The notes under the pieces are model-generated. The model was not told the DNA's origin and made no database searches. It saw only the letters and a program-made list of their open reading frames with translations. This document shows, one piece after another, positions 10,362 through 27,020 of a stretch of DNA of 64,000 nucleotides (position 1 is the stretch's first letter; each line of letters begins with the position of its first letter). A program made the position numbers and the translations under genes. The stretch is from Malacoraja senta (taxonomy: Eukaryota), in NCBI GenBank assembly GCA_038087875.1, contig CM075982.1, forward strand, positions 18,104,001-18,168,000. Reading direction: 5' to 3'.

Positions 10362-13339
10362 CTGTTGAGGGAAAGAGGCTTGCATGAGAAATGGACCACA
10401 CTGAGCAATGTCTTTCCTGAGGATGTTATCAGCAGCGGAAATTTTAGTATAATATAGAATTAGAAAAGAGTATCATTAGCAGACAATCAGAAAACAGCCC
10501 TTCAAGCAGAATCTACCTTTCAATCAGAACACGACTGATTACTTAATGTATCACAGCATTTCATTATTATTTATAATGTAAAAAAATTAATTCTATTAAT
10601 CACACAATTTAAAAAAAAATTATGTTATGTACAGAATGCAAGAATTTAGGCCACATTCCCTTAAATTAGGAAGATTAAAGCATAAATATTTCCTCTGGTT
10701 GAAGAATTTAGAATAAATACATGAATCAGGCGAGATGTCAGGAGGTATTTCACACTAAGAATATTACAAATCTGGAAATTTCTCCTCAAAAAGCTGCTAA
10801 TTCATAAATCTTACCATTTTTCTATTCAAAGGTACTCAAAACCTATCTGATCACTTGTTCATAAACCTCTTTTGTGGTTTAGTATTACATTTGTTTGATA
10901 AGACATCTGCAAAATGCTTTGAGATGTTTCACAACATTAACGGTATTAAAACAAATAGTAGTTGTCTAATCATTACATTTATGAACACTGAACTCCATCT
11001 GCCAGTTGCCTCCATCCATACATTTAGGATTATTGTGCATTGACTATTTGTATTATTGTGCATTGGGTCGGTCTTATCTACAGGTTTATCTACAAACCTG
11101 AAAACTTAGAAGAGTCTCTTTCTTTATGATGATTAAAAGGACAGCTGATAATCCGTATGAAACTGCATGAGGAACCTGAATTCACAACAACATCTCCGCT
11201 GTAGCCATCTCTCACTCATTGTTCCAAAGAAAGGTCTTTCCACAGATCCTGCCTGAGCTACTGGGTGCTTCCAGCTTTTTATTCCCACTCACACAATTTC
11301 TCTTAAATGGTGCAATGTAAAACCCAGATGGATTCCCATAGAATCTTCAAGATAAAAGAAATATAGGTGACCTAACATTTCTGAATTTCTGCATGTTTGC
11401 CCTAATTCTCACCATTGGCAAATTACCTCTGGATCTATCTCTTGCTTCTGGTATACTTTACAACTGCTACATTTTTTGCCTAATCTTCCTTTTTATTGTC
11501 TAAAATAGAGCAGATATAAATGGAAAACAACTTACTGGTTGTTATCCCACTGCATCAAATATCAACGGAGACCAAGATCCAAAGCGTTACAACCAACAAG
11601 GCATTGCACTTTCCTCATGGGGTCTGTTATCAGGGTCACTGACCTTTCAACTTATGAATGTACAAAGGAACTGAAGCCACTTTGGGTACGCTCTAACGCT
11701 CAATAAGTTTGTGGCTGGTGTCCTTCCTTAACTCTATCCTTTGCATTTTCCTACTTTTCAAAATTAACCAAAATGTAATAATCTCTTTCTTGAACATACA
11801 TGACCGAGCTCATGCAAGCCTTTGGGATAGAGAATTCCAAAAAATATCAAATAATTTGAGGTGAACAATTCCTCCTAATCCGTCCTAAATATCAGGTTTT
11901 AATGAATGATCATTGGCCTGAAACATTTACACTATTTTCTCTTAATGTATAAACTCTCATTGAATATGATCATGGTACATCAAGGTGTTCTTGTGTTGCT
12001 GATTCAAGGATAAGTGTTGGCTATACTATAGAGGATGTGATTGTGGAACTAAAGGTAGCCCTTGTAAATTGGCCATGGATCTGGAACATTATCAACTCCA
12101 ACCTGATTTCATACATTATTAATTCAACTGGAGGCACAAGCTACATTTTGCAGTGGGTGGGAGCAATAAAACAAAATGCCAATTAGAACATAGATGCCTA
12201 ATCTCTTGGGATTCATTTTAATTAATCACTGATTTGGAGAAATATTATTATACTGCAATGGATTAATAAAAAATATGTAGTCAGGAAGGCAGTCGAATGT
12301 TTGTGCACAAAACCGTGACTAACCTGAAAATACAGATCAGAATTTATTTTGGTAGCTTTTAAATTATACGTTAATATGTGAATTATTTAGTGGATTGGAC
12401 AAGACTTCTATTTACCAGTACAGAATAAATGCGTTCATTCCATTCACTCCACTGTTAGTGCTGCAATATTTTTAGGTTTACTACATTATTGTGGCTGTTG
12501 TGAAATCAGTCTCACACATTAACTAGTTAAGGTTGTAGGAACATAAAATGGGATTATTAAAGTTATAAATACTGCTGTAATTATTCCAAGTTTACTCATT
12601 AGTGTGCTTAACGCCCTACAAGTTTTAAAGTGATGTCAAACGGGTGAAAAACATTTCAAACATAGGAAAAGAGTAGGCCATTCAATACTTTGAACATGTT
12701 TCATTATTCAATTAGATTGCAGTTGATTGGCACCTTCATTCAATTCCCATGGTTTCATATTACTTAATGCCTTGCTAACATAAATCTCCAGTCTTATCAA
12801 ATTTTAATTGATCTATCCTCAACAACGTCATGAAGGACAGAGTTCCAGATTTTCATTACCATTTAGACAAAGAAGTGCTGTCTAAAATTACACATTATAT
12901 ACGAGAAAGGCATAGTTCTAATTTCACCCACGGGTGTAAACTCTCCTACCAGAGGAAACACTTTCTGTACGTCTAATGAAAATATTTGATCATCTTAAAC
13001 AACTCGATTATATACGCTCTTAATTAATTTCATATGAGAAATATAAGCCTAGCCTAGGAAACCTGTTACCATAATTTTCTATGATTAGGACTGATGCTAT
13101 TTGAGTGAATAAACACTACATGTCCTTCAAGGCTAATATATCCTTACTGAAAATCAGTGTTCAGAACTAAATATAGTAGTACTCTAGATAGTATTTGTAG
13201 AATTCATATGGCTCTTCTTTCTGACACACCCACTCTATCACATGCCTACTCATTTGTCCTTTCCTCCTGTCCTTTATTTCTCTAAAAAGCTACTGATCTC
13301 CAACGTGTCACAGTTTTGACAAAATACTTGATTTTAATA

Positions 13340-20989: not shown

Positions 20990-22500
20990 TGTTCTGTCTC
21001 ATACATGAGAACAGAAAAAAAGCTTTTTGCACCTGTTTCATCTTTGAGCATGGCTGATCCATTGCTTTCTGCCTTAGATATGTTCAGTTACTGATCCTTC
21101 ACATCTCTCCAAGGTACAGAGTTCCAATTTGCTTTATAATCTCTTATTTGCTACCTGATTGAAAGTCTTTGGACAGTCCAAATTCACCATATCCAATCAT
21201 GTGCTCTTATCTATGCTGCTATTTACAATATCTAAAAGCCTTAATAGATCTACAAATGTCCTCATCCCGTTCCAAATCCCCTCTTCCAATCGCATTATTT
21301 TCAAAGAGTCAAGTTACCATTTCCTTATTAATAGATTTGCCATTTGCTCTATGATGTCAGGCTAACTGATCTCTAATTCCCAATTATCTTTCTCTCTCCT
21401 CTCTTCAATGCTGGGGTTATATTTGCATTCTTCCAATTTCTGGGAACCACTCAAGAATCAATGGAAATTTGGAACATGACAACCAGTGCATGCACCATCT
21501 CAATCAGCATCTCCTCAACAATATTGCAATGAGGGGCTTCAGACACTGGGGATATATCAGCCTTCAAACCCATTAACTTCTCCTTTACATTTTTAAAACT
21601 AATATTTCCCAGTTATTCTAAACCAACTGTTCTTCCAAGAAGACAGACACAAATAATTACTCTGCTATGTAGACAATAGACAATAGACAATAGGTGTAGG
21701 AGTAGGCCATTTGGCACTTCGAGCCAGCACTGCCATTCAATGTGATCATGGCTGATCATCCCCAATCAGTACCCCGTTCCTGCCTTCTCCCCATATCCCC
21801 TGACTCCGCTATTTTTAAGAGCCCTATCTAGCTCTCTCTTGAAAGCATCCATTTATTTATTCCCTGATAGAAATTTCCCTTGTCTCAGGCTGAAAGGAGT
21901 TCTCTCTATGTTTGGTATTTTACATGTCTACAACAGCTTTTACACATTTTTAAGCTTCTTGTTAGATCTCAAGTTCAACTTTCTTATTCCTTATTAATAC
22001 CTCAGCCCTCCATTGCCAAATTTGGATATTTCCTCAATGTTCAAGACTTTTCATTTTTGGCAGCATTGTAAGACTTTATCTTTGATCCAATATTACCTTT
22101 AAATGTTCCTGTCAGCCATGGTTGGACCCATTTACCAATTTATTTTTAGTGCCTTACAAGAGATATATAATTTGTTGTAATCTATGAAATAATGAAATAA
22201 TTAATTATTTAAATAGTTTGTTTACTGTTGGACATTTAATGTAGACTCCCAATTTACCACAATCTGCTTGTGCCTCATACCTTTGTAGTTTGCTTTGTTT
22301 AGATTTAATACTAATTTTGGACTAAATTAAATAAATTCCCATCTTTGTATAAAATTCTACCATATTTTCATCAGTCTTCCCTAAAATCCCCTTAACCACA
22401 AAGTTATTTAGTTAACTTCTCACTGCAAAATACTAGATCTAAATAACCTGTTCTCTAATTGGTTTATTGACATATTTATCCATAAAACAATCTTGTACGA
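20990..22500 (-). mobile_element. Old degenerate CR1 body
   Basis: Reverse-strand CR1 ORF2 signatures (gtcaggctaactgatctctaattccc, ttccaatttctgggaacc, gtcagccatggttggacc). Confidence 0.6.
21672..21850 (-). mobile_element. Young CR1 3' end nested in the older CR1
   Basis: (AGACAAT)3 tail followed by the reverse complement of the 3' UTR seen at 4440-4615 and 30232-30406. Confidence 0.9.
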
Positions 22501-22638
22501 AGTCCTGGGACAAAGAAGATTTCTGCAGCATAGACGACCAGCCGATGCCCATAATCCCAATAGCACTAGTTGTGTGATCATTGACAGTAGGCAGCTAATG
22601 AACCTTTACAATGGTATCCAATGATTTTCTATGCTTAC

Positions 22639-22675
22639 CTATGCTTCCTCTTTTTTTCTGGAACCTGAATCAGAC
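22639..22675 (-). pseudogene. SRRM3: Disrupted SRRM3 exon (~exon 8, SDSGSRKKRKH): acceptor reads GG instead of AG and there is one extra A (37 nt instead of 36)
   Basis: Minus strand reads cttatacgg|GTCTGATTCAGGTTCCAGAAAAAAAGAGGAAGCATAG|gtaagc. The donor is intact. The A7 run shifts the frame to ...AGA AAA AAA GAG GAA GCA TAG. Confidence 0.8.
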
Positions 22676-23154
22676 CCGTATAAGATGAGAAGTGACTGAG
22701 TGTAGGGGTTTGCTCGATGTAGTCTTGAGCACAATGCTCTTTGATTGCTCCACAAAGAAAATACTTGCAAAATATATTTAAGATTCCATGTATCAAGGAT
22801 ACTTAAACAAGTGGTTTATTTCAAAGAGATTAAGACATTCTCCTAGTTTTTTTTATCACCGGATCACAACATTAGGCAATTATTGTGGGTCACTTTTCCC
22901 ATTTTAGAAGACATAAATACAAAGACCATTTTCTTTAGTAAGAACAATTAACACGAGCATTTGGAAAAACCAATGATGCACAATGTTCATTTGGATATCA
23001 AAGAGCCACTTCACAATTTCTAAGTCCTACCTTTAATGTTCTGAGAAGAAAGGTTACTGACCTGAAATGATCACCATCTCATTCCACAATTGCTGCCTGA
23101 CCTGCTGAGTATTTCCAACATTTTAGATTTAATATATAATTTTGAATGTGACTT

Positions 23155-23985
23155 AAGAGTCAAAGAGCCATACAATGTGGAAACAAGCCCTTCAGCCCAA
23201 CTTGCCCACACCGGCCAACATGTCCCATCTATATTACTCCTACCTGCCTGCGTTTGATCCATATCACTTTAAACGTGTCTTATCCATGTACCTATCTAAA
23301 TGTTTCTTAAACATTGTGACTGTACCTATGTCAACTACCTCCTCCGCAGCTCCTTCCATACACCCACCACCCTTTGTATGAAAATGTTAGCCCTCAGGTT
23401 CCTATTACATCTTTCCCCCCTCACCTTAAACCTATGTGCTCTGGTTCTCAACTCCCCTACTCTGGGCAAGAGACTCTGTGCGTCTACCTGATCCATTCCT
23501 TTCGATGGATGATTTCGTACAACTCTATAAGATCACCCCTCACACTTCTGCACTCCATTGAATAGAATCCTAGCCTGCTCAACCTCTTCGTACAGCTCAG
23601 GCACTCGAGTCATGGCAAAATCCTCATAAATCTTCTCTGCACCCTTTCAAGCTTGATAAAATCTTTCCTAAGTGTCCAAAACTGAACACAATACTCTAAA
23701 TGCGGCCTCATCGACGTCTATACAACTGCAACATGACCTCCCAACTTCTATACTCAATACTCTGAGTGATGAAGGCCAATGTGTCAAAAGCCTTATCTAC
23801 CTGTGATGCCACTTTCAACACGATATGCACCTGTACTCCTAGATCCCTCTGCTCAACAACACCCCCCAGAGCCCTACCATTCATTGTGCAGGTCACGTCC
23901 ATGTTAGTGCTCCCAAATTGCACCATCTCACATTTCTCTGTATTAAATTCCATTAACCATTCCTCAGCCCATCTACTCAGCATGA
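23155..23985 (-). mobile_element. CR1 LINE 3' fragment
   Basis: ORF 23708..23983(-): WAEEWLMEFNTEKCEM...EQRDLGVQVH...YRSWEVMLQLYR. Confidence 0.9.
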
Positions 23986-24727
23986 GTTAACTTCCACATC
24001 ACATATGAACAAGTTATTCCCTATACAACATTCCTACTTTGTTGTGTGCCTGAGATGACTAAATTGTAATAATTCTGTGTTGAACTGGGATGCCACAAAG
24101 GTTAAATCTCATTACTTACCTGGTATATTTTGGGCATCCCACTAACATGGTACTGTATTCAACCAAATAATCTCTTCCAACAGCTAATCTCCTTGATCAC
24201 CAACTTTCTGATCTCCAAACTGACACTGGCACTGACCACAGATCTCCTATTAGACCCTTATTGGTCTTCAATCCCAACTGGACTCGAGATGTGACCAGAC
24301 ATCTTACTGCGGCCTTCTTCCCCTGACAGAGAATCTATTTTGGAAGCTGAAATGCTACCTTGGGAACCATTTACATTTGTAGTTGCAGACCACAACTTAA
24401 ATTAGCATGCCTTGCAACAGGGAGCCAAAATAAACAGAAACAACTGTCCATGGAACTCGATGGTATAAGAATTATCCAGATCCCTCACATTTCCTCATGT
24501 GCAAGGTTTTAAAAAAGATTGTCTGGAAACAGATTCAAAATTGCACTGTAATCTATTTCAAAATCTTGATGGTTCCTTTAACTTTCATTCAGATATTGTG
24601 CTGTGGCCAAGGATGTGAGAAAGACATTATGATTTTCTCCAGGGATTATGCAGCCGATCGATTCTGCATTAGATGTGCTATACCTAGAGGGGCTGGTATG
24701 ACTACAGAAGAACAGAAGCAACTCCAC

Positions 24728-24796
24728 CTGTCTCTCTTGTGTTTCTTCCCACTCTTCTTTTTTCTCTCTTTCCGTGATGATGAAGAACTTTCGCAA
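24728..24796 (-). CDS. SRRM3: SRRM3 coding exon (~exon 7), 69 nt, phase 2-2: CESSSSSRKERKKKSGKKHKRDR
   Basis: tttttcttcatag|TTGCGAA...GAGACAG|gtggag. Matches human CGSSSPLRKKKKSVKKHRRDR. Confidence 0.9.
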
Positions 24797-25494
24797 CTAT
24801 GAAGAAAAACAAAACATTTTAAATATAACAATTGTCTCTTTCTGAAAATACTTGCATCTAGTACAAGAAGAACCAACCAGGAAACAATACGTCAGAAAAA
24901 TAACTTGCTGGCTTTGCAATTTTATTTACAGCAGAGGAAGACAAATCAACAATTCTCAAGCTAGACTTCTCTACCCCTGGTGTATTTTTTTTGTGGCTTT
25001 TTATGTAAGCAAGTTTAATGTGCTGCGTTTCACAAAAATTGTCCGAGTCACGTTAAATTATAATCATAGCTTCCCAATAAATGAATGAGTGGGAAGATGG
25101 AAATAGAATTTGCAAAAGAGCAAAAGAAATTAAAGTTGTTCAGGGTGTCAGGAAGTTCCTCTTCATGCAAATGCTAATGGAAATCTGGAATGCTGTCTTC
25201 AAAAAGCACTGATGAAACAGGGAGTTCAAAACTGAGCTTGATAGCTTGTATGTAGAAGTGTATTAATGGATTTGAAACTAGAGAAGTAGACAGAGTTACG
25301 ATGTACATCAGTTTCGATATACTAAATGGAAGAACAGACTTGCAGAATATAAACAGACAATCATGGAAATACTCTACAGGTTGGGGAGAAAACATTAAGG
25401 TTACAGGTTGACTACATGCATGATAATTGGAAATGGTGAGAAAGCAAGCATGCTTTCAATTGTAGAGGTGGAAGTAAGAGTGGAGAGAACAAAT

Positions 25495-25760
25495 GGACTG
25501 GAGGTCATAGCCTCAGAATTAAAGGGCGTTCTTTTAGGAAGGAGATGAGGAGGAGTTTATATAGTCAGAGGGTGGTGAATCTGTGGAATTCTTTGCCAGA
25601 GAAGGCTGTGGAGGCCAAGTCAGTGGATATATTTAACGTAGACAGATAGATTCTTGATTAGTACAGGTGTCAGAGTTCAAGGGGAGAAGGCAGGAGAATG
25701 CGGTTAGGAGAGATAGATCAGCCATGGCCAATGGTGGAGTAGACTTGATGGGCTTAATAA
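25495..25760 (+). mobile_element. CR1 3' fragment
   Basis: gtcatagcctcagaattaaagggcg...gtgaatctgtggaattctttgcc...ggagtagacttgatgggc. Confidence 0.85.
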
Positions 25761-26690: not shown

Positions 26691-26779
26691 AGCATTTAAT
26701 GACTTGCTCATTCAAGCATTTCGATAGGACAGTGTCACTTTTTCTATAGATGACCTCCACTTTGACCTTCTCACACTTA

Positions 26780-27016
26780 AGGGCCTGTCCCACTTTCACG
26801 ACCTAATTCACGACCTCTGCCGAGTTTGCCCTTGACTCATACTCGCAACATGGTCGTCACGAGGTCGTAGGAGGTCGTAGGTAGGTCATAGCAGGCCGTG
26901 ATGGTAGTCGTAGGTACTCATGGCATCAAGTAGGTCGGGCCGTTTTTCTCGCATGATGAAAAATGTCCACGAGAAAAAGAGGTTGTGAATTAGGTCGTGA
27001 AAGTGGGACAGGCCCT
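26780..27016. mobile_element. PIF/Harbinger-type MITE (237 bp, 39-bp TIRs, TTA target-site duplication)
   Basis: Left TIR agggcctgtcccactttcacgacctaattcacgacctct; the right TIR is its reverse complement with one mismatch. TTA at 26777-26779 and 27017-27019. Internal GTCGTAG repeats and no coding capacity. Confidence 0.9.
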
Positions 27017-27020
27017 TTAC

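Follow-up and report, generated by a model that had tools for sequence, protein, structure and literature searches.

Lineage-specific loss of exons through the weakening or destruction of their splice sites is a well-described evolutionary route (reviewed in PMC12992808, where Wang et al. 2015 is cited for it). Among the cases named in that review is exon 3 of TNNI3, which has been lost or inactivated in shrews and moles (PMC12992808). The DNA analysed here, a window of 64,000 nucleotides, contains a further case of this kind. SRRM3 lies on its minus strand, and the intron between two of the gene's exons holds a 37-nt relic of a conserved 36-nt exon (22675-22639). We put the probability that this is a dead, skipped exon, lost in this lineage, at roughly 80%. 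It is a new instance of the described route, not a new kind of event.

Neural, retinal and endocrine microexons have a master regulator in SRRM3. For the splicing of microexons, its eMIC domain by itself is reportedly both necessary and sufficient (PMC8797185). A comparison of the window's 220-nt exon (8176-7957, minus strand) with 1.84 billion representative proteins yielded a single match, isoform X2 of SRRM3 from the electric ray Narcine bancroftii (XP_069741050.1), which reads ...KKHKRDR-SDSGSRKKRRH-RSTSPKSKRK.... A wider search gathered 128 vertebrate SRRM3 proteins, and the ...KKH(K/R)RDR anchor could be located in 120 of them. The 12-residue exon peptide is present in 113 of these 120, from the chimaera Callorhinchus to mammals, birds, turtles, frogs, gar, bichir and teleosts. 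Four proteins skip the exon exactly (two frog isoforms, a thrush and a tree shrew), and three are apparently mis-annotated. Cartilaginous fishes were represented in the protein searches only by N. bancroftii and Callorhinchus milii, with no skate or shark protein, and a search of the literature on SRRM3 in skates or sharks brought up no relevant paper. In genomic DNA, a tinamou locus (L001, ~10503-10538) has a discrete 36-nt exon with ...ctcag/G...CACAG/gtgag borders and the same phase as here.

The encoded patch corresponds to Narcine residues 140-151, between cwf21 (59-102) and SRRM_C/eMIC (481-544) and outside both Pfam domains. The 36-nt exon is ancient and normally constitutive in SRRM3, and its patch belongs to the disordered linker that runs from cwf21 to the C-terminal eMIC. 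Since the exon is found almost throughout the jawed vertebrates, two other cartilaginous fishes among them, its loss in the window is lineage-specific. DSG is a beta-TrCP-type degron motif, and a degron of this type was considered for the patch; this reading was dropped because the D varies among vertebrates, where SESGS, SASGS and STSGS also occur.

The order of exons in the window (24796-24728, 22675-22639, 15314-15264, all on the minus strand) is that of the orthologues. The upstream 69-nt exon (24796-24728; ...CESSSSSRKERKKKSGKKHKRD plus 2 nt) has an AG acceptor and a CAG/gtggag donor, and it is 96% identical to Narcine SRRM3 residues 115-139 by tblastn. The downstream 51-nt exon (15314-15264; STSPKTKRKDRSKQRRR), to which the 69-nt exon is joined when the relic is skipped, has AG/GT borders and is 94% identical to Narcine residues 151-168. 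With the exons at ~32359-32270, 10361-10254 and 8176-7957, these two make up the intact SRRM3 exons of the window, which are 89-96% identical to Narcine except for a 9-residue gap in the 220-nt exon. The gene as a whole is alive.

The gap in the 220-nt exon (8176-7957, minus strand) amounts to ~27 nt and is in frame; Narcine has RKPCCARCS at this place, and Callorhinchus has the residues too. The gap reads as a second lineage-specific trimming of the linker. The annotated Callorhinchus SRRM3 of 376 residues ends by read-through of the donor of this same exon into the intron, and the translated intron start in the window (7956-7890, minus strand) is similar to the Callorhinchus tail (DVCSLF..., C/T-rich). 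This similarity suggests conservation, either of a pyrimidine-rich intron start or of a truncated isoform.

The original prediction placed a homologue of the SDSGSRRKR.H exon in the expected position with an intact GTAAGC donor, and both the letters and the flanking exons agree with it. The relic encodes the S-x-SGSR-K/R-KRR-H/Y patch as SDSGSRKK (8/8), followed by RKH in the +1 frame; with one A removed, it reads SDSGSRKKRKH. In all six frames of the 64-kb window, SDSGSRKK is the sole site where 6 or more of the 8 residues are identical to the exon peptide, a match far beyond chance. No second, functional copy of the exon was found in the 64-kb window, and no Rfam match for a structured RNA over the relic was found in 21500-25500. 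The 5' splice site (22638-22633, minus strand) is intact and is the same in relative B, one of the species considered below.

The former 3' splice region (22697-22676, minus strand) has retained a pyrimidine tract as strong as those of the window's real acceptors (13 of 17 pyrimidines), and it ends in tacGG where ..AG is expected, the acceptor dinucleotide at 22677-22676 (minus strand) being GG. The predicted TACGG is thus seen at 22677, while the TACAG given as its ancestral form is inferred; the tinamou exon is preceded by ...ctcag. Downstream, an A7 homopolymer (22657-22651, minus strand) contains an extra, frame-shifting A, seen in the window sequence and in reads. As had been predicted, the relic is consequently 37 nt long, and its SDSGSRKK is followed by a shift of frame to EEA-stop. 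The in-frame TAG forms the last three letters of the relic (22641-22639, minus strand) and is TTG in relative B. With 37 nt and an in-frame TAG, the relic lacks the 36-nt open frame of a 2-2 phase exon. Inclusion would yield ...KKHKRDR-SDSGSRKKEEA-stop. Skipping gives ...KKHKRDR/STSPKTKRKDRSKQRR, that is ...KKHKRDR/STSPKTKRK..., with the frame kept, and translation in this way confirms the predicted 2-2 phase of the flanks and the frame-neutral junction ...KRDR/STSPK....

Contigs from four public runs were aligned to window positions 22300-24900. In the species of the window (species A), a 1297-nt contig from run X1, which may derive from the assembled sample and is hence not fully independent, covers 22300-23120 (821 nt) with zero substitutions and zero gaps. 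Because this contig is identical to the window, the GG, the A7 and the TAG are all present in reads. Inspection of reads at 22651-22657 and 22677, as had been proposed, therefore returns A7 and GG, and the earlier caution that the homopolymer alone might be a sequencing error is contradicted by the seven As in species A reads. The remaining case for an artefact of assembly or sequencing, under which the true genome would have AG and six As and the exon would be normal, is that homopolymer length is error-prone and that the best species A DNA run may be the assembled sample itself. Against this stand the identity of the read contig over 821 nt and the A-run length, which differs between species in clean single contigs. 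Furthermore, relative B, an independent species covered at depth 26.5, has what we read as the same GG, and this is not explicable by an assembly slip. An artefact is extremely improbable.

For relative B, DNA run X3 supplies one contig over 22300-23116 at depth 26.5; it carries 31 substitutions and 5 gaps relative to the window, a divergence of ~4%. Its differences near the relic lie at 22624, 22627 and 22628 (intron), 22640, 22645, 22651 and 22698. At 22640 the TAG becomes TTG (minus strand), at 22645 AAG becomes AGG, the ancestral Arg, and at 22651 one T fewer leaves six As. Rebuilt accordingly, the relic of relative B is 36 nt long with an open frame, SDSGSRKKRRHW (SDSGSRKKRRH). No difference is listed at 22676-22677, among the 29 of 31 contig substitutions that are listed; the other two most likely lie in the transposon-covered last 34 nt (23083-23116). 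As the 29 other differences of this depth-26.5 contig are all listed in order, the absence of one at the acceptor is read as GG. Compared across cartilaginous fishes, as the original prediction suggested, the exon is present in the proteins of the electric ray Narcine and the chimaera Callorhinchus, and relative B appears to share the GG acceptor.

Two further observations concern this region in the relatives. At 22624-22628, three clustered substitutions (AAAATC to GTAAGC) give relative B a second CATAG/GTAAGC 10 nt past the relic donor, and the cluster looks like one templated or slippage event, not three point mutations. For relative E, two of six substitutions are displayed (22645 and 22698), both as in relative B. 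Relative E lacks the one-letter deletion of relative B, so its A run has at least seven letters, and the distance-to-end figures point to an additional letter inserted between 22646 and 22697.

Taken across species, the two lesions appear to differ in age. Since the GG is common to A and B and the extra A is absent from B, the acceptor mutation would be the older lesion and the extra A the later one. The near-intact frame of relative B likewise indicates that the acceptor change came early, and it is probably the killing lesion. The original argument, that two independent lesions mark a real lineage-specific loss, is upheld as regards the loss by the reads, the GG of relative B and the near-universal presence of the exon elsewhere; the lesions are not equal, however, the extra A being absent from B. 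Over the 37 nt of the relic, A and B are separated by 3 changes. The 220-nt exon, in which all 18 sampled words are common to the window and relative B RNA, was counted as 0 changes in 220 nt (Fisher p = 0.003 against the relic), and the flanking intron has 29 in 809 (Fisher p = 0.16). By these counts, the divergence of the relic is that of intron and not that of a functional exon.

All AGs in the 120 nt upstream of the donor were listed, and just two of them yield a product that is open and in frame: the 9-nt GAG option, and an AG farther upstream, at 22697-22696 (minus strand), with which the exon is 57 nt long. The earlier statements that internal AGs yielding 26 or 19 nt would shift the frame and that a 9-nt GAG exon would keep it are correct; that the GAG is the sole in-frame option is not, given the 57-nt exon. 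With the upstream AG, the frame is restored by 20 extra nt together with the extra A. The product would be ...KRD-SHFSSYTGLIQVPEKKRKH-RSTSPK, with 19 residues in place of the ancestral 12 and inserted residues that end in ...EKKRKH. If this were true, the two lesions would cancel each other out, and the exon would have been reborn through a compensated splice-site shift. The donor is intact, and among the AGs upstream of the relic within 120 nt, this is the only one whose product is open and in frame. The pyrimidine tract before it is weak, however (9 of 17, against 12-14 of 17 at four real acceptors of the window), unrelated residues would replace the conserved SDSGSR, and an RNA contig of relative E passes the AG unspliced. 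An open frame of this kind is expected by chance in ~13% of cases (an estimate, from 1/3 for frame and ~0.4 for no stop in 19 codons). In relative B the same acceptor would give 56 nt and a frameshift, so the 57-nt exon is probably a coincidence, and we consider its use very unlikely.

SRRM3 was found in no RNA run of species A; the RNA compared with skipping of the dead exon is that of relatives B and E. Transposon depth (~23000-24040) filled the joint and loose-end tables, so the RNA reading rests on depth. In each of the four runs these transposon fragments are present at extreme copy number, their summed depths ranging from tens of thousands to millions; they include a reverse-transcriptase-like open frame at 23986-23711, and the window's other copies match at 75-85% identity. 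The RNA run of relative B (X25) has zero coverage on the unique sequence of 22300-24900, the 69-nt exon included, and is uninformative on splicing. In the RNA run of relative E (X23), the 69-nt exon is covered at a depth of ~25, as calculated back from the two bins into which it falls, and within the 2.6 kb examined all unique intronic bins are empty except 22517-22708. This stretch is a single 192-nt contig at depth 3.8, which crosses the upstream AG, the dead acceptor and the donor without being spliced at any of them. Because this contig accounts for all depth over the relic, the well-expressed transcript contig of relative E is without the relic. The coverage fits skipping plus a trace of pre-mRNA, as read from depth and not from junctions.

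The 192-nt contig itself may reflect pre-mRNA that was covered by chance, or else a relic that is still recognised to some extent. The latter touches on a poison exon, in which low-level, frameshifting inclusion through the internal AGs (26 or 19 nt) would down-tune SRRM3. The donor and the pyrimidine tract have stayed the same in A and B, as such a role would have it, and the only covered non-exonic unique stretch in relative E RNA sits exactly over the relic. That contig, however, is unspliced at both ends, is of low depth and could be pre-mRNA; the divergence of the relic is intron-like; and the internal AGs have no upstream TGC motif, which is typical of SRRM3/4-dependent microexons. We regard a poison exon as improbable, if somewhat less so than the 57-nt exon.

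For the preferred reading, a dead and skipped exon, the following history is proposed. An AG-to-GG change would have struck the 3' splice site in the common ancestor of species A and relative B. GG cannot serve as a splice acceptor, so the spliceosome would join the 69-nt exon straight to the 51-nt exon, and since both junctions have the same phase, the protein would merely be short of 12 residues. With the frame kept, the skip would cost only these residues of a redundant basic linker. Selection on the relic would then have lapsed and neutral drift set in. Decay in species A would comprise the extra A in the homopolymer, with its frameshift and in-frame TAG, and an Arg-to-Lys codon change; in relative B it would comprise a change of the exon-end AG to TG and the three clustered changes just past the donor. 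We infer that the mRNA of this species skips the relic, and that the acceptor mutation caused the skipping and did not follow it.

The reverse order, in which the exon was already alternative or rarely used and the acceptor mutation was merely the first neutral hit, is unlikely but is the alternative to be taken most seriously. A few annotated isoforms, from frogs, a bird and the tree shrew, skip exactly this exon, and a neighbouring 30-nt SRRM3 exon (27050-27021, minus strand; KKRKAGSGR...) is also compromised. Its donor is now GTAAAG followed by a MITE with terminal inverted repeats (26770-27020), which begins directly after the GTAA of the donor. With the MITE in this donor and the 36-nt exon dead, two adjacent linker mini-exons are compromised in this lineage. 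Narcine isoform X2 is likewise without upstream mini-exons, lacking both the 30-nt exon and the exon preceding it. Against skipping having come first, the frame of relative B is otherwise open over 36 nt (SDSGSRKKRRH), which leaves little decay before or with the acceptor change; the present-day outcome would in any case be the same as under a causal acceptor mutation.

Loss by acceptor mutation makes this a clean, datable exon death, with the splice site going first and neutral decay after. A 12-residue patch kept from chimaera to mammals is evidently dispensable in one cartilaginous-fish lineage. The dead 36-nt exon and the damaged 30-nt exon together suggest that the K/R/S-rich linker tolerates erosion, which fits the eMIC domain carrying the activity. 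For annotators, the practical consequence is that the 36-nt exon should not be "repaired". The case is otherwise ordinary, with no evident phenotype, and it opens no long-standing question.

The relic is best placed by comparison with its orthologues and with other lost exons. In Narcine and the tinamou, the orthologous 36-nt exon occupies the same place between the ...KKHKRD and STSPK/SRSPK exons, in the same phase and with a GT donor. The first eight residues of the relic, SDSGSRKK, are identical to those of the Narcine exon, and RKH comes next once the extra A is discounted. The relic differs from the orthologous exon in having GG for AG, 37 nt for 36 and an in-frame stop, and in not being demonstrably present in mRNA. 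As in losses of the TNNI3 type, a constitutive exon of a length divisible by 3 has been inactivated in one lineage, the gene is otherwise intact and the relic is still recognisable in the intron. Unlike those losses, the SRRM3 case comes without a phenotype or an adaptive story, and the lost residues form a short basic patch within a K/R/S-rich linker that is redundant. The closest parallel within the gene is the 30-nt exon, a frame-neutral mini-exon of the same linker region whose lesion is likewise common to relatives; there a transposon sits at the 5' splice site, whereas the relic of the 36-nt exon carries a point mutation at its 3' splice site.
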